This document shows positions 5 through 57,367 of a DNA stretch of 64,000 nt, in pieces. Source of the DNA: Anthoceros angustus. Taxonomy: Eukaryota; Plantae; Anthocerotophyta. Positions within the stretch are counted from its first letter, which is position 1. Every line of letters begins with the position of its first letter. Below the pieces are notes generated by a model that saw only the letters and a program-made list of their open reading frames with translations, did no database searches and was not told where the DNA came from. The stretch spans positions 868,001-932,000 of the forward strand of contig VJWM01000106.1 of assembly GCA_010909165.1 (NCBI GenBank), read 5' to 3'. Both the position numbers and the translations under genes were made by a program.

Positions 5-2173
5 ATGTATGCAGCTGGAGGTAGGCTAGAGGAGGCCATGGATGTGCTTACCAGGGTCGGCAAACCGAATGCCTTCATGTGGTTTTCCATTATCTCTGTC
101 CATGCTAAGCATGGGAAATTTAATGCGGCCATACAATTGTACCATGAGATGCGTAGGTCAGAAGTGAAGGCGGATGCTCACGTCTTTGTAGCTGCCCTTC
201 AAGCTTGTGCATCTGCCGCAGACTTGGAATCTGGTAGAAAAGTGCACTCTGATGTGTTGGACAGTGGCATTCCTCCCAACTTGTTTGTTGGAAACTGCCT
301 GGTGGACATGTATGCAAAATGTGGCGAACTGGAAGATGCACGCCGGGCCTTTGACAGCTTGGCCAGAAAGGATGTGGTGACATGGACAGCCCTGATTGCT
401 GGGTATGCACAGCAAGGGGCTCAGCAAGAGGGCCTGCTTGTGGCTAACGATGTGACTTTCGCTTGCCTTCTGAAGGCCTGTGCGAGCACTGGTGCCATAC
501 GGAAGGGCAGGCAGCTGCACTCACAGATTGTCGAAAGGGGACAGCTGGATAACATAGTGTTGGGCAACTGCCTGGTAGACATGTATGCAAAATGTGGTGA
601 ACTGGAAGATGCACGCCAGGTTTTCAACAGCTTGGCCACAAAGGATGTGGTGACGTGGACGGCGCTGATTGCTGGGTATGCACAGCAAGGGCTGGGGCAT
701 GAGGCTCTTGTTTTGTATGAGCAAATGGAGCAGGAGGGCCTGATTGTGGCTAACCATGTTACTTTTGCTTGCCTTCTGAAGGCCTGTGCAAGCGCTGGTG
801 CCTTACAGAAGGGCAGGCAGCTGCACTCACAGATTGTCGAAAGAGGACTGCTGGATAACATAGTGTTGGGCAACTGCCTGGTGGACATGTATGCAAAATG
901 TGGTGAACTGGAAGATGCACGCCAGGTTTTTGACAGCTTGGCCACAAAGGATGTGGTGACATGGACGGTGCTGATTGCTGGGTATGCACAGCAAGGGCTG
1001 GGGCATGAGGCTCTTGTTTTGTATGAGCAAATGGAGCAGGAGGGCCTGATTGTGGCTAACCATGTTACTTTTGCGTGCCTTCTGAAGGCCTGTGCAAGCG
1101 CTGGTGCCTTACAGATAGGCAGGCATCTGCACTCACAGATTGTAGAAAGAGGACAGCTGGATGACATACTGGTGGGTAACGGCCTGGTGGACATGTATGC
1201 AAAATGTGGCGAAATGGAAGATGCACTGCAGGTTTTTGACAGCTTAGCCACGAAGGATGTGGTGACATGGACGGCTCTGATATCTGGGTTTGGTACTTGT
1301 GATGAAAGTCGCTACGCACTAGCTTGTTTTGAGGAGATGCTACTAGCTGGTATTCAGCCTAATGATACTACTTTTACTTGCCTTTTAGCAGCATGCAGTC
1401 ATGAGGGACTGGTGAACGAGGGTCGCAGGCACTTCAATTCCATGGTTGAAGAGTATGGCATGAAACCTACTAGTGACCATCACACTTGCATGATTGAGCT
1501 TCTTGGGCGTGCAGGCCATTTGGATGAGGCAGAGAACATGCTCTTATCGTGTGAGGGCCAAAGTAATATTGTGGGCTTGACCTCTTTGCTGAATGCCTGC
1601 AAAAGTCACGGGGATATAGAGAGGGCGACGCGGTGTTTCGAAAGCCTGGTTAGACTAGACCCGCAGCGGGCGTCCGCTTATGTTCTGATGGCCAATGCGT
1701 ATGCAGATGCAGGTAGGTGGGCCGATGTAGAGAGGATTGAAACCCAGAGAAGGGCAGCAGGAGCTAACAAGAAACCTGCAGTGGCGGGCATTGAGGTGAA
1801 CAAGCAGGTACATACATTTGTAGTTGGAGAAAATAGAGATGATATCGGGGTCAAGGTAGAGAGCTTGAATGCACGTCTGAAGCAGGAAGGGGGACACGTC
1901 CCCCACACAAAGTTGGTGTTAAAGCCATTGCCCGAGAAGGATAAGGAAGATGCACTTTGTGGGCACGCTGAGAAGCTAGCTCTGGCGTTTGGTCTGTTGA
2001 ACACTCCGAGTGGCACACCTCTGCTGGTAACGAAGAATCTGCGGATGTGCAGTGACTGCCATAGTTCCACTGAGGTCATGTCAAGGGTTGAAAAGAGAGA
2101 CATTGTGGTGAGGGATGGGTACCGTGTGCATCGATTCGAAGGTGGTTGTTGCAGTTGCAAAGGTCGACCGTAA
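5..2173 (+). CDS. PLS-class PPR protein with E1/E2 and DYW:KP (GRP-type) deaminase domain; 5' end lies outside the window
   Basis: Intronless P-L-S triplets (DVVTWTALIAGY / TFACLLKAC / LVDMYAKCG), then P2-L2-S2, E1, E2. Domain starts KKPAVAGIEV, has Zn motif HAEKLA...CSDCH and ends CSCKGRP. The ORF begins mid-S motif, so it is partial. Confidence 0.97.
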   Translation: MYAAGGRLEEAMDVLTRVGKPNAFMWFSIISVHAKHGKFNAAIQLYHEMRRSEVKADAHVFVAALQACASAADLESGRKVHSDVLDSGIPPNLFVGNCLVDMYAKCGELEDARRAFDSLARKDVVTWTALIAGYAQQGAQQEGLLVANDVTFACLLKACASTGAIRKGRQLHSQIVERGQLDNIVLGNCLVDMYAKCGELEDARQVFNSLATKDVVTWTALIAGYAQQGLGHEALVLYEQMEQEGLIVANHVTFACLLKACASAGALQKGRQLHSQIVERGLLDNIVLGNCLVDMYAKCGELEDARQVFDSLATKDVVTWTVLIAGYAQQGLGHEALVLYEQMEQEGLIVANHVTFACLLKACASAGALQIGRHLHSQIVERGQLDDILVGNGLVDMYAKCGEMEDALQVFDSLATKDVVTWTALISGFGTCDESRYALACFEEMLLAGIQPNDTTFTCLLAACSHEGLVNEGRRHFNSMVEEYGMKPTSDHHTCMIELLGRAGHLDEAENMLLSCEGQSNIVGLTSLLNACKSHGDIERATRCFESLVRLDPQRASAYVLMANAYADAGRWADVERIETQRRAAGANKKPAVAGIEVNKQVHTFVVGENRDDIGVKVESLNARLKQEGGHVPHTKLVLKPLPEKDKEDALCGHAEKLALAFGLLNTPSGTPLLVTKNLRMCSDCHSSTEVMSRVEKRDIVVRDGYRVHRFEGGCCSCKGRP

Positions 2174-3333: not shown

Positions 3334-5730
3334 ATGATCGAGGCCATGGCGAAGCACAGCAAGACGGAAGCGGCCTATCTCAGCCTCCTCTTCCTGCTCC
3401 TCGCCATCTCCTCCCCGACCCTCTCCTCGACCCAGAACCTGTCCTCAACGCAGAACAGCACCAGCTTCAGGGTCACCAACTTCAAATCCTCCTCCATCCT
3501 GGTGACAGGGGACTCGGCAGTGCAACCCGACGGCTCCCTGCTAATGACGGTGAACTCGAGCGGAGTCTCAGGCCCGTCTCTCAAATCCCGCGCAGTCTAC
3601 TCCACCCCGGTCCAGTTCCTGGACGCGGCCTCCGGCACTGCGGCCTCCTTCAACACCTCCTTCACCTTCGCCATCGTCTCCGCCAACGGGACCGAGAAGG
3701 GCGACGGCATGACCTTCATCATCACCGCCGAGCCCGGGGTCCCCAAATCCATCTACAGCGCGGGAGGCAACCTGGCTCTCTACGACGTCCTCCAGTACAA
3801 CGTCTCCAACTCCAGCATCCATGTCGTGGCCGTGGAATTGGACACCTTCTCCAGCCCCCCCGACCCCGTGGGCGACCACATCGGGGTGGACGTCAACTCC
3901 TACATTTCTGCCAAGGCGGAGGTCCTCCCTCCAGGCCTCGCTCCCCTCAATTCCTCCTCCTCCAGGCAACGCCTCACGGCATGGATCGACTACGACGCGG
4001 TGGCCGGGCAGATGGACGTCTTCCTCGCCCACGCCCCCGCCCAAAAGGAGGCCGCCAGTCACGTACTCTCGTACGGCCCACTCGCCATCTCCCAGTACGT
4101 GCTCCCCAACTCCTACGTCGGCTTCACCGCCGCCACCGGGTCCTTCTTCGAGCTCCACGCCGTCTTCGACTGGAATTTCTCCAGCAGCCTGGTGCCCAAT
4201 CCGCTGTTGTCTTCCCCGCCTCTATTTCCCCCGGCTCCGGCTCCGGCTCCAGCCCCGGGACCGGAGCCGGTGGGCGGTGGGAAGTCCGGGAAATCCTCAC
4301 ACACGGGGCTGATTGCTGGTGTGGTTGTGGGATGTGTGGGAGCTCTGCTTTTGGTGCTGCTAGCGCTTGTGGTGCTGTTCCGGAGGAGGAGGTTGCGGGA
4401 GCCGGAGGAGCGGGAGAGGACGAAGTTCATGCCGGGAGGGGACGAGGGGCAGGATCTGTCGAGCTCGTGGAAGGAGCTGTATGCTGCGGATGTGAATTTC
4501 GGGCCGAGGAGGTTCACGCACGCCGAGGTGAGCTCCGCCACCAACCAGTTCGAGCAGAGTGCTTTGCTGGGGCAGGGCGGGTTCGGGAGCGTGTACAAGG
4601 GGGTGATTGCTGGTGCGGTGGCGGGGACGACGGTGGATGTGGCCGTGAAGAGGGTGTCGAGGACGTCGAGGCAGGGAGAACGGGAATTCCGAGCGGAGGT
4701 GCTGAGCATCGGGAGGCTGCGGCACAGGAATCTGGTGCCGCTTGTTGGATGGTGCCATGACCAGGGGGAGCTGCTGTTGTTGTACGAGCTCATGCCGAAC
4801 GGGAGCCTGGACAGATGGCTCTACCGCCCTCACCACCAGATTGATGTGGAATCGGATGCTTCTGCGAAGCCGCAGCTGCTGCCGTGGGGAGACAGGTACA
4901 ACATTCTCTGCGGGGTTGCATCCGCCATCGTCTACCTGCACGTGGAGTGGGAGAAATGCATCGTCCACCGAGACATCAAGGCGAGCAATGTGATGCTGGA
5001 CGCGCAGAGGAATGCTAGGTTAGGGGACTTCGGGCTGGCCAGACTCACCGACCACCGGTACGGAGACGGCGACCAGTCCGCGACCTCCACCGCGGTCGCG
5101 GGGACCCGGGGTTATCTCGCGCCGGAGTACGCGGTGTCGGGGAAGTCGACTCCCGAGTCGGACGTGTTCAGCTTCGGGGTTTTGGCGTTGTCTGTGGCGA
5201 CCGGTCGCCGGCCGTATGAGCCAATCGGGGAGGACGAGCAGTATCTGGTGGATTGGGTGTGGAGTTGGCAGGAGAATCAGAGGCTGGTGGAGGTGGTGGA
5301 TGGGAGGCTGGAGGGAGATTTCAATGAGGAGCAGTTGCTGCGGGTTTTGAAGGTTGGGTTGTTGTGCACCCATCCGGATCCTAAGGTTCGGCTTCCCAGC
5401 CAGGTGTTGTTGCAGATGCTGAAGGGGGACAATGAGCTGCCGCCATTGGCGACCTCCAGGCCGGTGGCAATTTATGTGAGCGAGTTCACGGTGCCGTCTG
5501 TGGATTCGCAGTTCTCGAGTTTGGAGAGGAACGTGGTGGAGAAGAAGGGGGGATCCGGAGATGTGCAGTATCCGGAGCCGGTGGAGACGAGCCACTCGGA
5601 GTCGTATCCCAGTGATTCCAGTCTCGTGAATCCCAGTGAGGTGGTGAGTCAGCCGGATGGCGAGAAGCAGCAGGGTGGTGATGCCGGGCCCGGGCATGGC
5701 AGGATGGGTTCTTTTGTGCAACCTAGATAG
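3334..5730 (+). CDS. L-type (legume) lectin receptor-like Ser/Thr kinase, intronless
   Basis: Signal peptide, legume lectin domain (GDGMTFII, VAVELDT, DHIGVDVNS), Pro/Ala stalk and TM helix. Kinase motifs LGQGGFGSVYKG, VAVK, HRDIKASN, DFG, GTRGYLAPEY. Confidence 0.97.
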   Translation: MIEAMAKHSKTEAAYLSLLFLLLAISSPTLSSTQNLSSTQNSTSFRVTNFKSSSILVTGDSAVQPDGSLLMTVNSSGVSGPSLKSRAVYSTPVQFLDAASGTAASFNTSFTFAIVSANGTEKGDGMTFIITAEPGVPKSIYSAGGNLALYDVLQYNVSNSSIHVVAVELDTFSSPPDPVGDHIGVDVNSYISAKAEVLPPGLAPLNSSSSRQRLTAWIDYDAVAGQMDVFLAHAPAQKEAASHVLSYGPLAISQYVLPNSYVGFTAATGSFFELHAVFDWNFSSSLVPNPLLSSPPLFPPAPAPAPAPGPEPVGGGKSGKSSHTGLIAGVVVGCVGALLLVLLALVVLFRRRRLREPEERERTKFMPGGDEGQDLSSSWKELYAADVNFGPRRFTHAEVSSATNQFEQSALLGQGGFGSVYKGVIAGAVAGTTVDVAVKRVSRTSRQGEREFRAEVLSIGRLRHRNLVPLVGWCHDQGELLLLYELMPNGSLDRWLYRPHHQIDVESDASAKPQLLPWGDRYNILCGVASAIVYLHVEWEKCIVHRDIKASNVMLDAQRNARLGDFGLARLTDHRYGDGDQSATSTAVAGTRGYLAPEYAVSGKSTPESDVFSFGVLALSVATGRRPYEPIGEDEQYLVDWVWSWQENQRLVEVVDGRLEGDFNEEQLLRVLKVGLLCTHPDPKVRLPSQVLLQMLKGDNELPPLATSRPVAIYVSEFTVPSVDSQFSSLERNVVEKKGGSGDVQYPEPVETSHSESYPSDSSLVNPSEVVSQPDGEKQQGGDAGPGHGRMGSFVQPR

Positions 5731-18919: not shown

Positions 18920-19088
18920 GAAGGGTATCTCAATTGAAATGTATTCAATTGAAATTCGAAAAGGGGATTTTTCTTTTGGTTTCCAAAGAAGGAAGGGTAT
19001 TTCCATTCAAATGTATTCGGTTGAAATTCATAAAGGGTGTTTTTCTTTTGATTTTCAAAGAAAGAAGGGTATTTCAATTGAAATTCAT
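18920..19088. repeat. 72-bp tandem repeat, about 2.3 copies
   Basis: GAAGGGTAT starts at 18920, 18992 and 19064. Confidence 0.85.
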
Positions 19089-19500
19089 TATGCCCATTCT
19101 CTAATTATATGAATCTTTCATACATTGTCATGAGTTGGAGCACAATAGGTAGAGGCGTCCCACCACCTTTGAGTGTGTCGAGCCCGGTCCTACTCCAATC
19201 TACCTAGAGCCATGGAATGGCGCAACCGGGCAAGGTATGTCAATGTCTTTTCTAAAAAGAAAGTACCAAAGAGAGCAAACCATGGAAACAAGTTTGACAC
19301 TCTCCATTTCCATTTTGAGTACGAAAAATCCTGGCTTTCGACTCCGAACTATAGATATTTTTATTGACTCCGAACTATAGATATTTTTATTTTTAGACGA
19401 GGAACTTACCTTTAGGGCTTTCTTTCTTGCAAGAAAAAGTTTTTGGGCACTTAATTTAAAATTTTAAAGTTTTAATTTATGATCAAAGGTTGAGTACCGT

Positions 19501-21695
19501 TATGGCATACCAAAGGGGACAGAGGGGATGGGACATTTTTTTTTTCGCGAAACCCATGCAAGGCGTGGGGATCTTGAGGAATATACCCTACATTCCAGTT
19601 TTTTCAGAGCACATGCCCACATGGCCGCTTTGGCGCCCTAACCAAGAGCGGCCAAGCACCAAAGGGGACACACACTTTTCAGTCCCGAAACCCTAAGTTT
19701 GATTTAAATGTTTTGTCCTTCCAACTTTGAAAACAAAGAGCCGGGACCGGGAAACTATGTTTTCAAGTTTTCCACACTTCCTCCTGCGATTAAGTTTTCT
19801 TCAATGCTATCCCATGCCCGGCAAACCCTAACCCGCCCGCCGCGCAGGCCGCACCAATGTGGTTGCCAAACCCTTCGTCAGCCCCGGCCATGGGCTTGCA
19901 AGGCAATGGCGGTAAGACGGCCATCATTTGCGAACCCTGCACACGCTCGCGGGCGTGTCCGTGTCTTCTTATCTAGGGACAATGGATTCTTGTTTGTAGG
20001 GTTTAGGGTATCGCGTTGCAAACACGTTCTAGCGAGATCCACCTCCACAGTGGAAGAGGGATGGGTGACCGAATTGGGTAGACCCATGCCTTATTCTTCC
20101 ATATCACGGTATACATGAAGGGCTGTCACGCACACACAGTGGTCGGAATTCCCTCCTATTATGCAAGTCTAGGTAACCACATCCTACTTACCAAGTCTAT
20201 GAAACACTCACTGACCGTCCTCCAATCTGCCACCCTTGGCATACATATTCACCACAATGGTCGGCACAAACACATCGCCATAAGCTGCGGCAAGAACCCA
20301 CACCACCACCGCCGCCTACCCAACAACCTCGCCAAGAACGGTTAGGCTCCGTGGAAAGAGCTGAAATTTTCAGCGAAGGGGTGCCATTCCATTGATCAAA
20401 AAAGGATGTCCACTGCACACATCGCAAAATTGCACAGCTAGCATCAAACCCTATCTCCTACTGCGGCCTTCCTAAGGCGCATGCTTCGGCCCCCTATGCA
20501 AAAAACCAAACAGCGCTGCTGATGCAACTCTGAGCACAAGGGATGACGACGCCGCCTACTTCCCCTCGTCCTCCATGCGCTTGATCATCTGCCGGAGAAC
20601 CTTAATTGTGCCCTCCATGGCCTCGACGGCGTCAAGCATTCCGCGGCTCATCGCTCTCCTGTCCCGGTTGGCCGCGTCCCCGCCTCCAGCAGGCCGCGTC
20701 CGGGCATTGGGCGTCGGAGGCACCCGCCTTGGCCTGGCGCTTCCCGCCGGACACTGTCCGACTCCTCGTGAGTCGCGCTTCCTCCCCTTGTGCTCGCCTC
20801 CGCGGAGTTGGGGTTGGGCGCACTCCGCTCTCCTTCTTCTTCCGACATGGCCTCCGCTCCGCCACCGTCAGCTGCAGTTGCTCCCCCCCCTCCTCCTCCT
20901 CCTCCTCCTACGGTGTGCCGCCGGATGATGCCCTCCACCGCCGTGAGCTCGCGCGCCTCCGCTCCTCCCCTCCAGCCACCTCCGAGCCTCCGCCTAATCT
21001 GCTGCTTCCGCTCCACGTCGAGATGCCGCCACCGATGGGCTGGTTATTCCTCCCATAAATCGCCTTCCTCAACCGGATGGCGCTCGGTCCCACTCCCTGA
21101 TCGCGCCAGATGCCGTGGCATTGGCTCGCTCGCTCCCAAAGACGTCGCCCCATCCGCGCCTTCGCATCCCGCCTCGTTCACTTGTGGCGCGCCCAGGCCA
21201 GTGGCTGGTGGCGAGCGCCTCGCCTGGATCGCCGCGCTCGCACCACGCGCTGCACCGCCTCGCACCTCGTCGCGTGCCGCCGGACCTCGCCTCCGCCCCC
21301 CATCCGTGCACTGCGTCGCGCCGTGCGCCCGTGCTCGTGAGTCGGCAAAGCAACCCGCCAGGTGATGTTCCTCGCCCCTGCCCTAAACCCTGCTGCTCCA
21401 GCCTCTTAGGATATGAACCCTAAAAACGGGCAGGTGGCTTGCTTATGCCACGTCCCGCTCCCTAAACTGGAACAGTGCAGGCGGAAAAAAATTTCTTGAT
21501 GCGTGCGGGAGAAAAAAACAGAGTGAGTGCGGGGGAAAAAACCCTAAAGTTCCCTTTCTTTCTTCCGGTGACGGCGAGTGGCGCTTTGGTCGTCCTTTGG
21601 GCTACCCCATTTTGATCGGGTTACCAAACCGGACACCAAAAGTTTTGCGGAAGAAAAAAAATGTCCGTCCCCTCTGTCCTCTTTGGTATGCCATA
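19501..21695. mobile_element. Non-autonomous TIR DNA transposon, 2195 bp, 6-bp TSD (IS3EU-like signature)
   Basis: About 50-bp imperfect TIRs beginning TATGGCATACCAAAG(G/A)GGACAGAGGGGA. TSD TACCGT at 19495-19500 and 21696-21701. No transposase seen. Confidence 0.9.
20064..20420 (-). pseudogene. PLS-PPR gene fragment inside the TIR element
   Basis: One frame reads DVFVPTIVVNMYAKGGRLEDGQ*VFHRLGK*DVVT*TCIIGG...ALHVYRDMEE*GMGLPNSVT (S then P motif), with an L-like segment upstream after a frameshift. Confidence 0.85.
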
Positions 21696-22232
21696 TACCG
21701 TACCCCAAGGAATGGTTCAACAGGATAATGCCGAAATAATTAGTTTTTGAAAAAAATAAGGTTCAACATAAATATGTATATTTTTCAAAATTTCAACATT
21801 TACAAAAAAATAATTTTATCAAATTTCAAAATTTATTAAAATACATAGCTATATATATAACTAATGGATATGTATAGACCTCCCCTAAATAGGCCCTAAT
21901 TTTCCACACAAACCCTAGTTTCCTTATTTTCGGCATCATAAACTCATAATTTTTTACCTATTCAACATTTTAAGTATAATAATTTCTGGATTTTCAACTT
22001 TTACTAATTTTAATTAATTAACGCCGAATCACCCCTTGGGGTATGGTAGTAGTGTAATATGCAATATACCTCATGGGACAGTATTTAATAAATATTAAAA
22101 AATAAAAATATATAATTTACCATATGTGTGGAAAATCCACTCAAACTTAGTATGACAATTAGCTATAAAATAAATATGAGAAACTTTGTATAAGAATTAT
22201 AAAAATGAATTACAAAAAAATGAGATTAAGTC

Positions 22233-26851: not shown

Positions 26852-28927
26852 CTACGAGTGCCTCCCAAAGTCGATGGGGATGGACTGAGGTTCCTTCTTA
26901 CCCTGTTGGACGGTCACCTCAATGGTGGAGCGACCGAAGAAGAGGGAAACCTTCAGCTTTCGTTTCATGTCCCTCTTGACAAGCCAGCCATCGGGCATCT
27001 TGAGGATGAAGCTGCCTTCTAGCTGCACTCCAGGTTCGTCTACGTATGCCGGGTCCCTATCTGCGCTAGAGCTGTACAATGAGATCTTAAGTTCCTTTTG
27101 ACCATGCTCTGTGGGGTAGAAGACATGGGAAAAGGTCTCGTTGATGGGGATTTCCTGGCCTCGTCGCACAAACACATGGAACACGTTGGTGCACCTCTTT
27201 TTGCCATCACCAGTCCGGAATGCATGTGACTCGGGATCTGTAGGCTGAAACTCACGAGTCACAAGAATGCCATAGGTCTTTCTCAGCACCCTGGACACCA
27301 CGATATCCGGAGACATGCCCAGAGTGACAGCTCCTTGGCAGATGGCACTCCCTGCATCCTTATGGCTCACGATCTCACAACTCTGCCCGAACCTTCTCCT
27401 CAGTCTCTCGTTCAGATAGGCAGACTGAGAGAAGCCCCCCACCACCATCATGATCTTGATATCTGCCGTCATCTCCCTTTCAATAAGAAAGATGACCTCA
27501 TCCACCACCGGATCGAAAATTCCCCTCATGTCTGCCTCCGAAATCTCTATTTCCCCATAATGACCTTCCTCCCCATCCTTTGTGCTGTCCATGGAACCAT
27601 TCATGTCCTCCTCATAGCTCTGCCAGTGCTTCTCCATCCTGGACGGGATGTTGAGGGTCTGAGGCCCATCCGGGTACTTGCCGCCGAAGTCATACTTGAG
27701 ATCTTCCCACTGGCTCATGACGTAAGACACAGCATGTGGATACCTCACCATGATCTCATCCAGGCACCCGATCCTCTTCTTCAGAAACTCCAAAAAGTTC
27801 TTGTCCACATGCGAACCTCCACAAAGCCCTCCAGTGCTGGGCTTCACCTGCCGGACCTTGAGAGCCGTGGTTTCCTCGTTGGCCTTGCACTGCACCACAA
27901 TATCCACCGTCCCACCACCTACATCAGCAACCAAGAACTTGTCTCCCATCTTCAGCTTGCTGCGCAGCTCAGTGTGCTTCCAGCAGAAGACAGAGGCAGC
28001 CTCAGGCTCAAGCACAATGATGAGTGGGTGCTGGCTCCCAGGCTCTCGGTCATCCATCTCCGGGCCGCGCGTAAGGGTCGACAGGTTCCTCTCATAAACT
28101 GCGGTGGAGGTGACAAGCCCAGCAGCCTGCGCACAGTCTCTCATCTTCTGCTTTGCTTCATCCTCCCATATGGCAGGCACAGTCAGGCACCATTGAACCT
28201 GGCAGGCAAGCAGAACAAGCACACCAGCAGCTCAGCCCGAATGCCACTAGCCACCATGCCGACAAACCATCTGAGTAATGCAGGACATGCAACACAAACA
28301 CCACCACCACATCCTTCTTACCTCGCTCTTCTTGAGCTGAATCATATTCAACCGCAGCTTCTCCAGAATGAATTCCCCAATCGCCCTCAAATAGTCCGTG
28401 ATAAGGATGTCCACCGTGAGGCCCTCGGGAAGCGGGTCCACATTCCAATTGTTCATCTGCTTGCCGTTGCTGCCTGCAAGATGGAGCTTGAACTTGGTGA
28501 GAAACAGCTTTCCCTCTACAGTGGCGACAGGGGATGTAGGCTGCGTGACCGGGGGTGCTGTGGGCGTAGTGGCAGACGCCACTCGAGTCCGCCTGCTCCG
28601 ATGCGCGTAGGCTGGATTGGGCACCACGGCTTGCCCGACCCTCTTCTCGTTGTGGGCCTTCTTCATGGCCTCGGAGTAGGCCACCTGAGCCAGCCACCCC
28701 CATTTCGCAAACACCCACGTCCCGTCCCCGCTAGACTCGTACAGCAGACTGGTCTGCGTCTTGCAGTACGCCCGCACCTTGGCCTGCGCCTGACCAGGCC
28801 ACTCGAAGAAGGTCCGAATTGCATCCGGATCCGCCGTCTCCGCATACGCAAATCCCGAATATGTGGTCCCGAAATCCAGCCCGACCACCACCCTGGGCCG
28901 ATCCTTGGACGACGCGGAGCGGAACAT
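26852..28927 (-). CDS. HSPA12-type atypical Hsp70 / actin-like ATPase; exons 28927-28322 and 28198-26852
   Basis: Motifs VGLDFGTTYSGFA, CKTQTSLLY, WCLTVPAIWEDEAKQKMR, LEPEAAS, VADVGGGTVD, VGGFSQSAYL; no EEVD tail. Confidence 0.9.
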
Positions 28928-34852: not shown

Positions 34853-35806
34853 TTAAGCGGTATACGCTGTGGTAAAGTATTAATTTCAAGTTTTAAGCAT
34901 TGACGGTATACGCTGTGGTAAAGTATTAATTTCAAGATCTAAGCATTGAGGGTATGGAATACCGATCTCGTCCGGAAGCCCTTTAGGGTTTTTTTCGATG
35001 GTGACAAAAGAAGTTTTCCTGCCGCATACGACGGGAAAACTTCTGGTGTCACACACTTGACGACATCGGGCGGGCGCGCCTCGTGTCCCGATCTCGTCAC
35101 TAAGCTGGTGTGTGTGTGAAGGTCGTTTAGGTTTTGACACACAAGGTTTTCTTTTAGGTCATGTGGCATGGGCCATCGCACATCCATTCGCATGACCCCA
35201 TCTGCCGTCGATTTGCCATAAGGAAACTGCCACGTGCCTTTATGGCGAATAGCGAGGAGGAGCCATCCGCCGGCGCCATGTCGATAGCTGGAGGCACCAT
35301 ACAGCCTTTGTGGTCGAGCGCTGAGGCGCCATGTCGATAGCCTGGGCGCCATGTCGATAGCCTGGAGGCACCATGTACGCCTCGCGCGCCTGGCTTTCGC
35401 AGCCATCCAGGCGTCGTGTGATTGCATTTGGCAGCCATACAGGCCTCGCGCGATAGCAGAAAGAAAAGTGGATGACGAGATTGGCAGCCATACAGGCCTC
35501 GCGCGATAGTAGAAAGAAAAGTGGATGACGAGATTGGCAGCCATACAGGCCTCGGGCGATAGCAGAAAGAAAAGTGGATGACAAGATCGGAACACGAGGG
35601 GGCAAGTTCCGAGACAAAAAAACTTTGTGGCGCCTACGGCACGTCGTCCGCTGATGTGGCGCGTATGTGATGAAGGAATCTTGAAGATGCGCAGGCATCT
35701 TCATGTAGAATACCGGAAGAAAAAAACTTGTCACACACACCCGGCTTCCTGACGAGATCGGTATCCCATATGAGGGTATACGCTGTGGTAAAGTATTAAT
35801 TTCAAG
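34853..35806. repeat. 46-bp tandem repeat x3; the third unit is split by a TIR element
   Basis: TATACGCTGTGGTAAAGTATTAATTTCAAG at 34861, 34907 and 35777. Confidence 0.9.
34953..35770. mobile_element. Non-autonomous TIR DNA transposon, 818 bp, 6-bp TSD (IS3EU-like signature)
   Basis: Ends TATGGAATACCGATCTCGTCCGGAAGCC ... GGCTTCCTGACGAGATCGGTATCCCATA. TSD TGAGGG at 34947-34952 and 35771-35776. Internal 53-bp repeat x3 at 35428-35590. Confidence 0.9.
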
Positions 35807-40700: not shown

Positions 40701-42800
40701 AAAAGACGCGGGGCCTGCAGATCCCAGATCGACAACTAGGGAGTCCTCGGAGCGCCCCTCATTGCACTGAACCAGGGATATTAAAGTTTGGTCAAAAGAA
40801 GCACCTCCAAAGAAGACGCTAACAAATGAAAGAACTAAGAGGCACACCTGGAAACATAATGTTCGACGAGCAAAGTTCACACATCCACAGACAGCACACA
40901 TCCAATCAGTTACAGCTGAGGTTCCCGTTCGGCTAGAAAATCCGGCACCCACTTGAGGTGCTCCTGCGCCTCCAGTTGGTTTGCTACTGCAACAACACGT
41001 TGTAAACCTTAGACCCAGACCAAGTTAGAGTCCTACCCCCAAGCATCTTCACTCTCGGCTCCAAGACAGACTGCCTAGGCACTAATACTATTCTGCCAGT
41101 TCACCAGGAAGAATACACGACCACCACCAACAAACCTGTACTCAAAGAAGAGGCGTCGACCGTCTACAACCAGCCCATCCCATCCAGCAGTATCCATCAT
41201 CTTCTGGGCGGCCTCCTGCAAACCATCAAGCAAATGTTGATCAGCCTGGACATGCCCCTCTCAAGACACCACTGAACAAACAGTGAAAACGAACAGGTCC
41301 TCGAACGTACCACAGAATGAAAGTCCACGAAGGCAAATCCCCTGGAAGCACCTGAGCTTCTCTCCTTTATTACTCTTACATGCCTCAAAGGACCAAAGTC
41401 AGCCTGTGAAGATGAAGCAAACCAATCCAAATATAGGCACTTCATAAGTTCTCGGGGAAGCATGTCTTGAACACATCCACGAGTATCTCCTCGGTTCTCA
41501 GACCATAAACCGGAAGAAAATGGTCAGTCTCGAATCTAAAAGCGCGAGGACCACATACCAGAGCTTTGTACAGGTCATCTTCAACGATCTTTTGAGAGAG
41601 ACCCTTCACCACAAGGGTCGCGGATGGAGCCTGCAGATTCAGGGTTGCACACAATCGAAGGCCATGGTCAAGCAACCAAAAGAAAAAAGAGAAGCCTCTG
41701 CCATACATGCTTGCACTGAAGAAGAAGACCACTTCAAAAAGCTTGCTCAATCTCCCAAAAAGAGGCATGCTCACCAAGGAAGCTCGATCCTGATGCCGCA
41801 CCAGATCACGGTCTCTCCGTTTATCAGCCCTCCCTTCGTGACGGGCATCCTCATAACTGTCCTCCCGCCAGCTCCTGCTATGCGTCCGAGGAGATCGCGA
41901 TCTGCGCCCATCATGGCTAAACGATCGCGACCTATCCCGTCGCCGCTCTCTCTCAGAGCTGCAATCCCGCTCCCTGCTTCTGCTCCTCTCCCAGTCCCTG
42001 TCTCTCCGCCTCCGCCAATCCCTCTCCCTCCTACCCCTCTCCCTGTCCGAGTCGTAGTCCCGGTGCCTGGAATACTCATGGTCCCCATCCCGGCTCCCCT
42101 CCCGGCTGCCCCTCAAACCCTTCCGGCTGCTGTTGTACTCATAGTCGTCCCCATCGAAACTATCTCGATCCCTACTACTGTGCCTGCCGGCGGGTCTGTC
42201 ATACCCATAATCCCGATACCCTTCCACAAAGCCCACCTTATCGTGCCTCTGCGCCTCCCTAAGGAGTGCTATATCCTCCTCCAGCGACCGCCTCTGCACC
42301 GGCGGCCAGAGGGCCGGGAAATTCTGTGCCCCCATGGAAAAGCCGTCCCGCTCAAGAAGCACGTCCCTCTCAAAAGCTGCTCTGGGATACGAGCTGTCGC
42401 GCGTCGCAAAGCCAGAGTCCGCTCTGGAAAATCCAGCTTCCCCTCTGGGATAGCCAGTGTCTCCTCTGGAATAGGCAGCGGCAGCAGCAGCAGCAGCATC
42501 CCCCCGGATGTAACTACTCTCCCCTCTGGGATACCCACCAGAGTCCCCCCGCTGGTAGCCAGCATCCCGTGCAAAACCTCCATCGACGAAAGCTCTGCCA
42601 CCATAGGCTCCCCCATTTCTATCACAGCAACGAGAGGGGGTGAGAAATTGGTAGCAGTCCATAACTTCACCTCAAGAAGACAAATCAGTGAGCCTGCGAA
42701 CATACAAGCCTCCTCTGAACCCAAAGCCCTCGCAGTCTAGGTATGGCCCCCGGGAATCGTAGTCGCCACTGCCTACCACGCGCGCATCCGCCTCGCTCAT
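37784..42800 (-). CDS. SUA: SUPPRESSOR OF ABI3-5 (RBM5/10-type splicing factor: RS region, RRM, RanBP2 zinc finger, RRM, OCRE, G-patch); start approximate
   Basis: APSATLVVKGLS, SRGFAFVDF, DWMCAVCGCVNFARRTLCFQC, GPTHVLVVRGLDE, GFVWDEASGYYYD, YRDRAAERR, IDERNVGNRMLRNMGWQEG, KKALARF. Confidence 0.93.
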
Positions 42801-45699
42801 AATTCTTCAGCATCATCTTTCCCCGGGTTTCGCCGCTAGGGCTTGATGCATGTCTCTGCGACCTGGAGTTGCCATGCCATCCAAACTCCCCGCTAGGGTT
42901 TCAACTTCGCCAGTCCGCTCTCTCACCCACAATTCGCTCGATACCTTCCTGCCGCCGAGTATATCTACGAGCCGGATCTAACATGGCCCGTTCCGACGGG
43001 GAGGTTAATTCCTTTTTTTTTATCGCTTATAACTCCACTCTATCATATATCGACTCCACTCGACTGGACTTGTATCACTGCTGCGACGTTTCCACTTGCG
43101 CCGCATCGACTTGCTTTTCCACCAATGTAAGGCCTGCGGGTACGGCCTATAATGCCACGTCATCACGAAGCACAACCTCTTGTACTTACTCGACGAGACA
43201 TCCATCCGTCGTCAACAGTGTGCGCGCTTCCCTAATGCTTGCCCCGGGAGCGCAGTCCATGTCCCTGCCCCGCCGCTGCCCATGCCATCGATGCCCTCGT
43301 TCTGGCGGCCGTCGTCGATGCCCCTTAGCCTCGCCGGCGGGGATCGGCCGTCATCAAAATTTATACTTGGGAAGTTGAGCCTTCACTCCTTCTACTTTGG
43401 CCTCACGCTTCTTAATCCGGGATATCCCCGTGTTGGAGGGCTTTGTCCTAGGAGTGGAGGTGGGGGACTGCTCGGTTTTTTAAGGACCTGGCCAGGGACC
43501 TGTAATTCCCTCGGGGTGAAGGTGGTTATGCTCCCATTTCCCTCTTTCCTCCCAGGCGGATTCTAAGGTCTAGAGGCTTCTCTACAAGAAAGGCAATGGG
43601 CAGGTGCTTTAGGCCTTGCTTTTGGATACCTCTGTTGCCCGATCCGCCAGAGCCTGCCTTCGCTCTTGTTCAGGGAAGGGGGCAAGTTCTTGGCTTCTGG
43701 CCCAACCTTGAATCCAGACCTTCCGATTCGCATTAGCTTCTTTCTCTACAGCAATGAGGTTCCTCCTGGGCCTGGTTCAACCTCTGGCCTCTTCTCCCCC
43801 GACTTGCAGCAGTGGAGCCTCCCTCGACGAGCCGGGGATTCACCTAGCCCGTTGTCCAAACAGTGGGCATTGACGTCGTGAGAGACGTCATGTTCATGGT
43901 GGTTAGGGAGAGTTGTTCATGGTGGTTAGGGAGAGTTGCTTTCTTTCTCGGAGGGAACGTGCATCTACATTGCACGACGATGCTCCATCTACATTGCACG
44001 ACGGTGCTCTATCTCTACACTGCACGACGGTGCTCCATGGAGGGAGGGCTGACCTATACTTGGTTTAGGGAACCAAGTTTATGTTGCAGATGTGGTTGTA
44101 ACAAACCCCACATGTGATACTGTCTACGTGCATGTCATCATTTACCCTCCTAGATGGGTGGCTAAGGGGAGGGCGTCAGCCAAAGTCTTCAAGTGCAGGC
44201 CTTTGCAGGAGGGCCACATCTTCATCCCCCTCACTGTTTAGAGACTACGAGGCCATGGTTAAGGGTTTCTCGAAGTTTGTCAAGGGTTGTGCTAGGGTAG
44301 GTCTCCTCCTATCATATATGGTCGCCTTTTTCCTACAATGGATCTCCATCACTCTGAAATCTTCAGGATGGCAACGAACGCGAGAGACGTTCCATCATCA
44401 ATCTCGGTAGTAGGTACATCCTATTATTCACCCGACTAGGATATTTTAGGAGCAAGAGGTAACTTTCAATTAGACTAAGAAAACTCAAACATTAGAATAA
44501 TTAATCAAATGAAGTTAAGTACATAGTCGTTTCTTTGAATGCAATAAGAATGTCATAGAGTCATTTTAAGGTTAATGTTATAGGCTCCACACCCTATATC
44601 TGCTCTATTTGTACCACTTCTAAGCATTCTGCCCTCTTGATTTGTTGTCTTTGCCAATGCTACCATCTGTATAAGCTCCATCGTTGTTTAGGGGTTTGGG
44701 TTCTATAATACTCATTTGCAATTGGCTTGTAATCTAAAACTGAGGTCTCCAAAATGGGCTAGTAAGAGCTTCATGTTTTTTAAAGATACTAAGCAAATTG
44801 CTACTGTCTCATATATTTGGAAATTATTACCATTTATATTTATTTGCAACATCATGCTTGAGTTGATACGCTTTGGGTTTTCGCTTACAAAGTTGGTGGA
44901 TATATAATGACTTTTAGTTCATTATTAGGTAACTATGAAAATATCTCAGCTTAAATCTCCCATAAAGAAATTAGCGCCTATTACCTGGACCAGACTTAGT
45001 CTACGATTGGTTTTGCATACTCTTCCCCAGGCAACTGAATCGAGTTAGCTTCTTTACCTTCACCACTCCAAAGTGGACTTTAATCGTTATCTATGTCGCG
45101 AATAACGTTTTTGATGACCCTTCACGGTGACTCTATGCTAATCACATATCTCAGCTGTTATGTTTTGCAATAAATTTTTCACCAGTGAGCAGAATCCTGT
45201 CTGGGACATTGGGGCCTACAGTTCTGTAACAGTGCGGGCGCGCTACTGGCCTAGTCCAGCCTAGTCCATAGTCTGTGACTGTCAGACTTCGGAACTGCCG
45301 GGTTTGCTGCTGGAGAACCCGGCTGGGAGTTTTCTGAGGAGGTGTGGGAACCTGTATCTTGGACCTGGGCTGTGACGTAGTGGATGAGCTAAGGTGCTCG
45401 CTGGTGGAATGTCCATTGAGCGGATGCTGGGCTTGGGATGCTGGACAATGGTGAGTGGGCAGCTAGGGACTTGGGTGAAACTCTTGTGTTGGCTAGCACT
45501 GGGCGGGGCTGGGCTGGGTCTTGCTGGTTGCTGACTGGTGGTTGTGGGCTGCGGAGTTAGATTTGTCTGTGTTGGGACAGCATCTGACCTGGGCATGGCT
45601 AATCTGGGCGTCTGCCATCGTGTGTGGCTTCAGTTGTGCACCTGATGGTTGATCTCCATTCAGGTGCGGCCATGTTCCTTCTGCAGGCTCATCTTCTGG

Positions 45700-46290
45700 A
45701 TCATTCCTCTTGTTTCTACCATATCTGCACGAACCAGCTCCAGCGTATATGTTTGACATGAGAACATGTGCTGCCGGGCATCTTGGGTTGGGCTTCAACA
45801 TGGATTCAAAGGCACACCTTCCTAACTCCACATTAAAATGTGTACGGCAAGCTCCAAGCAAGGATAGCCACACAACTGCCTGAAGACTGTAGTCCAAAGT
45901 GTTCATAGTTAGCCTTTTGCCGTGCTGATCATATCTCGCAATCCTAGCATTCCTTGACAGCATGTTTTCAGTGGGAAGTCCATTAAATACTGCTCTTTCA
46001 TCTGCAAGTGTGCTGACAAGGCACATCTCCTTGGCCTCCTCTGTTTTGTCAAACCTTGCTAGGAACCACATCTCGCGGGTTTAGTCTTTAACCAACATGG
46101 CGCATCCATCATCGAGGCTTCCAACCTTCGGACAGGTTTGGCCAAACAGGGCATTGTCAACTGTAACTGTGAGATCAGAAACAATGTCCACCGCTGAAAG
46201 CATTCCCGACCACCATGGCGATGATACGCTTGGGCAGCAATTTCATCTGAATCTGGTCAACAGCTTGGTGGGTCTTCCAAAAGACATCAG
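45700..46290 (-). pseudogene. Internally deleted PLS-PPR/E-domain pseudogene
   Basis: SDLTVTVDNAL...KVGSLDDG (S motif); RAVFNGLPTENMLSRNARIARYDQHG (S/P); AVVWLSLLGACRTHFNVELGRCAFESML.PNP...AAHVLMSNIYAGAG (E1/E2). Has stops and frameshifts. Confidence 0.85.
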
Positions 46291-55311: not shown

Positions 55312-57367
55312 ATGGTGACAACTGTGCGAGTCGGAGAGAAGCCAATTCGCGGACGAGCTGGTAGGCAACGGCCTTCGAACCTGCTCATTCCCAGTAATGG
55401 AAGAAATCTCTCACAGTTTCAGGTGAGAGGGTCATGCAGTAGAGCATTTTTGTATGTTTCAGTGCTGCCTCAGCTGATGGGTTGCGTCTGAAACAGGGTG
55501 ACAGGTTTATCCCAACCCGGAGTTCCATGGATCTGGATGTTGCCAACTTCAACTTGCTGAGGGTCACTAAGGATAATGCAGCTTCAAATTTAGAGGTTTC
55601 CTCTCCTATTAAGGTTGAACACTGTTCCTAGCCACTGTTAGCTCAGCTCTTCGGGTGTGATGGGCGGCCTGCAGTTTTTTGTTGATTGGGAGGCATTCGA
55701 TTTTTGTGCAGGAGGAGTATAAGCGGCAACTTGCTGAGAATCTGTTGCATGATGTCTCAGCATTGGACAGCCCCAAAATTCTGTCATTCAAACAGAAAAA
55801 TCCTTCTTCACCTTGTTCCTTGCAAGCTGACAAAGCTGGGTTGAGTGTTCCTTCAGCAAAAGCTTTCAGGCACATACCACAGGTCAGTGTCTTCTCATGC
55901 ATCCGATGGAGAGCTGGAGTATCACTTGTCTGACTGGTAGAAGGTTTCTGTTCCTTGTGCAGTCGCCAGTGAGGATCCTGGATGCACCCGAGTTGGTCGA
56001 TGACTACTACTTGAATCTTCTGGACTGGAGCTCCAACAATGTGGTGGCAGTGGCGCTGGGCACCTCGGTCTACTTGTGGTATGCTGATAGTGGAGAAATA
56101 AAGAAACTGATGAACGCATCTGGGGAGGAAGACTTTGTAACCAGTATCTCATGGGCTGAAGATGGGAAGCATATTGCCATAGGACTGAACAGCAGTGAGA
56201 TACAACTGCTAGATGTGATGGAAACACGCAAGGTTTGTTCGTCACTCTAGAGACTTCGCCTACATGCTTTCACTGCCTGGGAGCATAAGTGTTGACACCC
56301 TTATTTCTATATCAAGGTTAGGAGCATGCAAGGGCATCGGTCACGTGTTGGAAGTTTGGCTTGGAATGGATCAACACTTACATCGGGAGGTCGGGACGGC
56401 AACATTTTGAACCACGATGGTACAGCTCTTACCAGGAATGGCTGTTTCATTCACTTGCTTGGTTTTTTGTCAGCCGCTTTCACGATTTACTCACATGCCC
56501 TATGTCGCTATGTGGTTGTTTCTGCAGTGCGGATACGAAACCATATCTCCTCAGTTCTTTCCGGTCACACGCAAGAAGTCTGTGGACTTAAGTGGTCCCC
56601 GTCTGGACAACATCTGGCAAGCGGGGGAAATGACAACGTTCTGTGCATATGGGATGCAAGTCACATAAGTGCAGCAAGACCAGGACAACAGAGCGCGTCC
56701 TTCCTGTACAAAATTGATCAGCACCAGGCAGCAGTGAAAGCCCTTGCATGGTGTCCATTCCAGCGCAACTTACTAGCATCTGGGGGAGGTACAGCTGATC
56801 GGTGCATCAAGTTCTGGAATACACACACGGGGGCTTGCATCAAAAGCGTGGACACGCTATCACAGGTTTGTCAGTCGTTTCCTAAAATGCTCACCCTTGT
56901 TCCTGGACGCATCCACATTTCTCTTGATTATATACCATGGTTTGCTCCGCTTACAGGTGTGTGCACTGGAATGGAGTCCATTTCAAAAGGAAATTTTGAG
57001 CAGCCATGGTTTTAGTCTCAACCAGCTGTGTTTGTGGAAGTATCCCACGATGGTGAAGATAGCCGAACTCAGGGGTCATACTGCCCGTGTCTTACATCTC
57101 GCTCAGGTCAGTAAAGCTCAGGAAGATATCAACCAGGTCCTTGTGTTTGTCAAGCAGCTAATCTGTTGCACCTACCTGTTGCTCCCATTCGATGCTGATT
57201 AGACTACGTATTTCTGACAGAGCCCAGACGGAAGGGAAGTCGTGTCTGCTGCTGCAGACGAGACACTAAGATTTTGGAACGTTTTCGACTCACCTTTGTC
57301 ACATAAGAAGCTCTCTCGCTCTGCTGGAGCACAGGCCGAGAGGATGTCCACGCGGGGCATACGGTAG
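55312..57367 (+). CDS. CDC20: CDC20/FIZZY APC/C activator, multi-exon; start uncertain
   Basis: C-box [32 protein letters not shown]40 repeats, [10 protein letters not shown] and C-terminal IR tail. Confidence 0.93.

Follow-up and report, generated by a model that had tools for sequence, protein, structure and literature searches.

A PPR gene fragment between the ends of a small non-autonomous transposon, probably of the IS3EU/GingerRoot kind, in a probable hornwort genome

Introduction

Pack-MULEs are Mutator-like elements that carry gene fragments, and they are found in rice and in other plants. Another lineage of DNA transposons with such cargo is that of IS3EU and GingerRoot. IS3EU elements invariably end in TA..TA and in most cases have a 6-bp TSD (Kojima 2023, PMC10045372), GingerRoot has a 6-bp TSD and TA..TA ends (Cerbin et al. 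2019, PMC6839031), and the two make up one lineage, with a DDE transposase related to those of IS3/IS481 and to integrases (PMC10045372, PMC6839031). In Selaginella lepidophylla, 22 of the 77 intact GingerRoot elements carry gene fragments, introns included; capture is usually accompanied by loss of the transposase, and the cargo has 79-98% nucleotide identity to its parents (PMC6839031). Hornworts are unmentioned in Cerbin et al. 2019 (PMC6839031). As for PPR genes as cargo, the grapevine element Cactavine-5 is a member of the CACTA superfamily, of autonomous size and with a transposase ORF, and its PPR fragment includes the 3' UTR (Benjak et al. 2008, PMC2528002). Both gene-fragment capture by GingerRoot (2019, PMC6839031) and a class II element with part of a PPR gene (2008, PMC2528002) had thus been described before.

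The element described here (element 1) spans 2,195 bp, from 19501 to 21695, and has TAT...ATA termini. All positions are those of the window, by which is meant the whole stretch of 64,000 nucleotides that was analysed. Like a Pack-MULE, it is a non-autonomous TIR element that contains part of a host gene in non-functional form, such elements often being GC-rich and moved in trans; Pack-MULEs differ in having a 9-bp TSD and long Mutator-type TIRs, where this element has a 6-bp TSD and TAT..ATA ends. The likeness to GingerRoot extends to the TA..TA termini, the 6-bp TSD and the TIRs (PMC6839031, PMC10045372), and also to a host gene fragment apparently copied at the DNA level and to capture with the transposase absent (PMC6839031). 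However, the element is only 2.2 kb long, compared with 3.9-12.9 kb for the GingerRoot elements of S. lepidophylla, and its TIRs measure 46-55 nt rather than 100-150 nt (PMC6839031). In addition, parents were identified for the S. lepidophylla cargo, whereas none was found in the window for the patch described here. With Cactavine-5 it shares the status of a class II transposon with a PPR gene fragment, but it is small and of IS3EU type, and its fragment is an internal S-P piece (PMC2528002).

We consider it probable that element 1 is a non-autonomous transposon of the IS3EU/GingerRoot kind carrying a passive PPR patch, likely captured before the last transposition and moved in trans. To the IS3EU/GingerRoot-type elements with gene-fragment cargo this would add one clean case, probably from beyond the plant groups in which such cargo was first described.

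The element and its ends

The ends of element 1, and a second element of the same group, are as follows.

19495-19500, unstranded: left TSD copy TACCGT, identical to 21696-21701 and abutting the TAT terminus
19501-19546, plus strand: left TIR, starting TATGGCATACC, 46 nt, 85% complementary to 21650-21695
21650-21695, minus strand: right TIR, ending GGTATGCCATA, an inverted match to the left TIR
21696-21701, unstranded: right TSD copy TACCGT, in direct reading
34953-35770 (34947-35776 with its TSDs), unstranded: second element of the group, ends TATGGAATACC...GGTATCCCATA, TSD TGAGGG

It might be supposed that these TIRs and the TSD are chance flanks, or belong to two separate insertions, around a PPR pseudogene that was resident at the site. 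The window does hold material for such a reading, with an intact PPR gene at its start and a PPR relic at 45733-46008 that has no detectable TIRs. However, the ends of element 1 are far from what chance would give. When gaps are allowed, the inverted match extends to 55 nt at 87% (E 2e-11), and its 25-mer core is present in the window at the two element ends only, with 0 chance matches expected. An exact 6-bp direct repeat stands at both ends, for which the chance at fixed positions is 1 in 4096; because it abuts both termini, the two ends belong to one insertion event. Moreover, the termini carry a family-specific 11-mer, TATGGNATACC, that is common to element 1 and the second, independently validated element. 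Chance flanks, which the initial annotation had itself raised as one way in which its reading could fail, are therefore close to refuted by the TIR statistics, the family termini and the TSD, and a resident pseudogene so flanked is scarcely credible. The stretch from 19501 to 21695 is a true single insertion with the patch between its TIRs.

The validation of the second element comes from its surroundings. It sits in a short tandem array, the adjoining unit of which (about 34893-34946) is the uninterrupted target with TGAGGG present once, so that the 6-bp duplication and the boundaries are proven for this group. Apart from the 11-nt terminus, a subterminal motif, TTTTTTTCTTCCG, is common to both elements. 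No gene fragment was detected in the second element, and tblastn with the intact PPR protein was blank there.

Both elements have the 5'-TA...TA-3' termini of IS3EU/GingerRoot, both have a 6-bp TSD (TACCGT in element 1, TGAGGG in element 2), and TIRs of 46-55 nt are present in element 1. Neither a transposase nor any other Pfam domain was found in ten interior frames of element 1, and the large ORFs of the window likewise contained no transposase by Pfam, so no element-encoded DDE transposase accompanies these ends. Accordingly, element 1 is non-autonomous, and from its ends and TSD only it would be placed in the IS3EU/GingerRoot kind. Element 1 is a single insertion bounded by an exact 6-bp TSD, lacks a transposase and has host-gene sequence between its TIRs, which by definition makes it a Pack-type element, as first proposed. 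The element itself would be passive, and a DDE (integrase-like) transposase supplied by an autonomous relative and recognising the TATGGNATACC ends would move it in trans.

Non-autonomous elements usually originate by internal deletion, which brings up another account of the small size and the cargo together. The patch may go back to an IS3EU-like element of far greater size that already carried cargo, and of which the 2.2-kb element is an internal-deletion derivative. This would still be capture, but older and by a different element; we regard it as unlikely.

The two TIR arms diverge by 13-15%, which means that the element is old and that the history of its interior is blurred. In nucleotide comparisons, the window contained no further copy of element 1, nor was a paralogous empty site for it found there. 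A metagenome scan with the TIR core returned 0 matches, and Rfam gave no match on 19000-22200.

The PPR-derived patch

The part of the interior with PPR similarity, and the stretch that lies upstream of it on the same strand, can be given as two features.

20064-20276, minus strand: PPR-derived cargo, from tblastn, L-S-P profile, codon-phase GC and CpG o/e
20277-20540, minus strand: stretch upstream of the patch, without PPR similarity, with CpG o/e of 0.68 and weak GC periodicity in the PPR phase

The PPR-derived stretch runs from 20276 to 20064 on the minus strand, in a single frame and with zero indels, for 71 codons or 213 bp. It comprises an S motif of 31 aa, followed by a P motif of 35 aa and by the opening 4-5 residues of an L motif. 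Read on the minus strand from 20420, the translation is ...DVFVPTIVVNMYAKGGRLEDGQ*VFHRLGK*DVVT*TCIIGGNSDHCVCVTALHVYRDMEE*GMGLPNSVT, with four in-frame stops in the patch: TGA at 20208-20210, TAG at 20184-20186, TAG at 20169-20171 and TAA at 20091-20093. These are the four that were originally described, and all were located.

The stop-free pieces of the patch are only 25-35 aa long, which is too short for the Pfam PPR models, and they were left unscored by Pfam; for this reason, tblastn and a home-made profile were used. The profile, modelled on the four L-S-P units that the local PPR gene contains, was run on six-frame translations with X in place of stops. It matched the patch frame only, over model positions 36-100 (S and P), with an i-E of 5.8e-14. 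When the intact PPR protein was used as the tblastn query against the whole window, only three places were found, namely the gene itself (5-2173), 20276-20064 and a relic at 45733-45864. Over 71 aa, the patch aligned to the intact protein with 39% identity (E 1.7e-8); over 42 aa, identity was 48%.

The initial annotation had placed the PPR fragment at 20064-20420. The S and P motifs in one frame hold for 20064-20276, whereas no PPR similarity was found on the minus strand of 20277-20420 by either tblastn or the L-S-P profile. In the frame of the patch, 20277-20420 contains two additional stops (TGA at 20370-20372 and TAG at 20316-20318), so the longer span holds six in total.

A working PLS-class PPR gene has an uninterrupted P/L/S array followed by an E or DYW tail, and nothing of the sort was found around the patch, which has no start codon and no L, E or DYW similarity flanking it on either side. 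A short stretch elsewhere in the element, 'KCGKLEN' at 19759-19779 on the minus strand, was considered as a PPR motif and rejected as a chance likeness, with a profile score of -5.

The intact gene at 5-2173 encodes a PPR-DYW protein, in which Pfam recognises PPR, the E motif and the DYW deaminase, with a tail of the DYW:KP type. Such a tail agrees with a hornwort host, as does the lack of close annotated relatives. The gene is apparently truncated at its 5' side by the edge of the window, the frame being open upstream of the first ATG. The alignment of MYAKGGRLED in the patch with MYAAGGRLEE in this gene, to which attention had been drawn earlier, reflects a true likeness (18 of the 49 residues in that stretch are identical, or 37%), but one that is generic and at the family level, with no match between the DNA sequences. 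Indeed, no nucleotide-level match was found between the element and the rest of the window, including the PPR gene and the relic. Because the amino-acid identity of the full patch is so low and nucleotide similarity is nil, the gene at 5-2173 is not the parent of the patch and resembles it only as a member of the same family, and nucleotide comparison revealed no other parental PPR gene in the window.

The second PPR sequence of the window, the relic at 45733-46008, has an open frame of 192 aa with a sub-threshold match to the E motif. TIRs were sought around it and none were detected within 2 kb.

Composition of the interior

The remaining interior features of element 1 are the following.

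20541-21400, unstranded: GC-rich core, GC 0.69, CpG o/e 1.06, several frames open
20556-20702, minus strand: coding-like end of an open frame ...AMSRGMLDAVEAMEGTIKVLRQMIKRMEDEGK, GC3 0.81, stop at 20556-20558
21476-21660, plus strand: right subterminal region with TGCGGRAGAAAAAAA four times (21476, 21504, 21528 and 21646)

The base composition of the patch resembles that of the PPR gene and differs from the remaining element. The patch has a GC content of 0.48, a CpG o/e of 0.53 and codon-phase GC of 0.55/0.36/0.51, and the corresponding values of the intact gene are 0.51, 0.45 and 0.60/0.41/0.53; in the rest of the element, outside the patch, CpG o/e is 0.9-1.06. The interior is thus a mosaic of the element's own subterminal repeats, a GC- and CpG-rich core and the PPR patch. 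The weak periodicity at 20277-20540, of about 2 sigma, suggests that this stretch is possibly more decayed cargo and that the captured piece may once have been longer.

The rest of the interior had been described as GC-rich, which is borne out by the value for 20541-21400. No recognisable protein was found in the open frames of that core. The frame ending at 20556-20702 has no Pfam family, no look-alike in the ESM Atlas and no relative in a word search. Two queries were used in the word search, the longest frame of the interior (197 aa, plus strand) and the coding-like minus-strand frame (103 aa), and neither of them retrieved a relative or itself.

The several telo-boxes noted at the outset are also present. 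The motif AAACCCTA occurs five times in the element, where 0.05 would be expected (P about 2e-9), and three times in the other 61.8 kb of the window, one of these three standing 215 bp beyond the right end of the element and another lying within element 2. The third copy of TGCGGRAGAAAAAAA (21528) continues into the telo-box at 21539, which in turn lies in the 14-mer CTTTAGGGTTTTTT (at 21536; read inward from the nearest end, on the minus strand). Only two copies of this 14-mer exist in the window, one in each of the TATGG-ended elements (21536 and 34981), and both are subterminal and in the same orientation to the end. As CTTTAGGGTTTTTT is common to both subterminal regions, the telo-boxes are, at least in part, a property of the transposon group. 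The earlier proposal that the GC-rich, telo-box-bearing interior is a captured promoter or 5' region is weakened by this, given that the telo-box sits in a 14-mer specific to the subterminal regions of the two elements.

Capture, movement and decay

The contrast in composition between the patch and its surroundings is compatible with any foreign origin, and so also with the patch having arrived after the element had inserted, as filler in the repair of a double-strand break or as a later nested insertion, in which case the element would never have moved it. A length of 213 bp is well above what is usual for filler insertions, which counts against the first of these routes. With regard to the second, no internal TIR/TSD pair, LTR or poly-A was found bracketing the patch, only short repeats at chance level, and in the absence of a bracketing pair nothing indicates that the patch belongs to a nested element. 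Furthermore, transduplication is documented and frequent in GingerRoot (PMC6839031). Entry after insertion is therefore distinctly improbable.

Capture by the transposon before its last move remains the preferred explanation. The 213-bp patch would be a DNA-level copy of a middle part of a PLS-class PPR gene. Its uptake most likely preceded the last transposition, in the manner of Pack-MULEs and GingerRoot, the timing being judged from its position alone. Interrupted by four stops in 71 codons, derived from inside the repeat array and lacking a start as well as E and DYW parts, the patch is presumably dead cargo.

The stops were initially ascribed to transition decay, and for two to four of the four this is plausible, the fitting changes being TGG to TAG, CGA to TGA and CAA to TAA, with CAG to TAG as a further possibility. 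Extended to the element as a whole, decay by way of methyl-CpG finds no support: outside the patch there is no depletion of CpG, and the intact PPR gene is itself low in CpG.

Bearing on the PPR family

PPR genes make up 7.9% of the predicted genes of Anthoceros angustus (PMC7027989). At a share of about 8%, random capture would often strike PPR genes. The initial annotation had gone further, holding that this transposon family picks up and moves PPR modules and so offers a route to the PLS-PPR expansion. As a general habit of the family this found no footing, since element 1 is present in a single copy, no gene fragment was detected in element 2 and the relic at 45733-46008 has no detectable TIRs. 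As a route to expansion it is implausible for an internal scrap of 71 codons with four stops, the more so as random capture of PPR pieces is to be expected. Being short, dead and without an identifiable parent, the scrap has no bearing on the expansion of the PPR family in hornworts.

A function for the cargo would take one of two forms, with PPR modules being shuffled into new editing-factor genes or with small RNAs from the element acting on PPR genes, in line with the siRNA crosstalk with editing genes that the initial annotation had envisaged. An antisense regulatory role was suggested for the PPR fragment of the grapevine CACTA element (PMC2528002), and hornworts have a greatly enlarged set of PLS-PPR genes (PMC7027989). 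Against this stand the density of stops and the internal character of a piece that has no start, E or DYW; the patch also resembles neither the PPR gene nor the relic at the nucleotide level, and hence has no obvious small-RNA target in the window, while capture by chance is expected where PPR genes are so numerous (PMC7027989). Functional cargo would therefore be highly improbable. A broader speculation is that non-autonomous elements of the IS3EU/GingerRoot type in what is probably a hornwort capture PPR modules above chance, their transcripts giving rise to small RNAs, or to substrates for recombination, by which the very large PLS-PPR editing-factor family is shaped, and that, separately, the telo-box-bearing subterminal motif is a landing site for telomere-repeat-binding or Polycomb factors; we hold this to be very unlikely.

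On the reading preferred here, that of a PPR patch carried passively by a non-autonomous element, the practical consequence is a modest one. PPR scraps of this genome can reside in transposons, and annotators would do well to mask such relics as transposon cargo and not to count them as PPR pseudogenes.

A neighbouring HSP70-12-like gene was also seen in the window, in the form of two ORFs, one of 456 aa and the other its upstream exon at 28247-28927. When the 456-aa ORF alone was searched against a protein collection, the best match had 80% identity and was located on a 3.2-kb contig.

Subterminal Motif of the TATGG-Ended Elements

The two TATGG-ended elements of the window, element 1 (the 2,195-bp non-autonomous transposon that carries a PPR scrap) and element 2 (at 34953-35770), have more in common than their 11-nt terminus. 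A 14-mer containing a telo-box, CTTTAGGGTTTTTT, is found in just two copies in the window, at 21536-21549 and 34981-34994, one subterminally in each element and in the same orientation relative to the nearest element end. Together, the two elements hold six of the eight telo-boxes in the window, and the 14-mer could serve this family as a binding site for the transposase or for a chromatin factor. The interior of element 2 contains a few tandem units. Its two long open frames gave no match to Pfam families.

35390-35590: about 3 tandem units of about 58 bp, GGCAGCCATACAGGCCTCGCGCGATAGCAGAAAGAAAAGTGGATGACGAGATT

A further sequence, TCTGGGATACC at 42525-42535, differs from the family terminus by one mismatch and lies 370 bp from a telo-box at 42894. 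Either chance or a further, degraded family member of which a solo end is left could account for it; seven matches were observed in the window, with 2.4 expected.

The Surroundings of Element 1

The region around element 1 is gene-rich, although the sequence immediately flanking it is AT-rich (GC 0.29-0.39). Adjoining its right end is an AT-rich stretch flanked by a 23-nt inverted repeat, TACCGTACCCCAAGGAATGGTTC / GAATCACCCCTTGGGGTATGGTA (83%), whose ends, TACC[G/A]TACCCCAAGG, bear a faint likeness to the TATGGCATACCAAAGG terminus. The repeat opens with the 6 nt that form the target site duplication of element 1, so the stretch may be a small older element, with element 1 having landed on its edge.

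21696-22048: AT-rich stretch bounded by inverted repeats, 353 bp
3334-5730 (+): L-type lectin receptor kinase, ordinary host gene
26852-28927 (-): HSP70-12-like gene, split into two ORFs of 226 aa and 456 aa
49016-50857 (-): DUF4200 coiled-coil protein, ordinary host gene
56326-57015 (+): CDC20/Fizzy WD40 fragment, ordinary host gene

The closest database relative of the HSP70-12-like gene is just 80% identical, and the named relatives, from a lycophyte, a liverwort and a moss, are about 40% identical, so the A. angustus genome and its close kin are almost missing from the protein collection.

Other PPR Sequences in the Window

5-2173 (+): intact PPR protein that also has an E motif and a DYW deaminase domain
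45493-46071 (-): second PPR relic in an open 192-aa frame, PPR similarity at 45733-46008

The relic retains degenerate remains of S/P motifs together with an E motif (Pfam E_motif, E 1e-4, under the cut-off), followed by a non-PPR tail, and matches the intact PPR protein at 45% across 44 aa. No inverted repeats of at least 22 nt were found within about 2 kb of it. As for the intact gene, its reading frame stays open 5' of the first ATG, and the gene therefore probably starts before the window. The protein ends in CSCKGRP with KPAVA upstream, a pattern that looks like the DYW:KP, U-to-C type.
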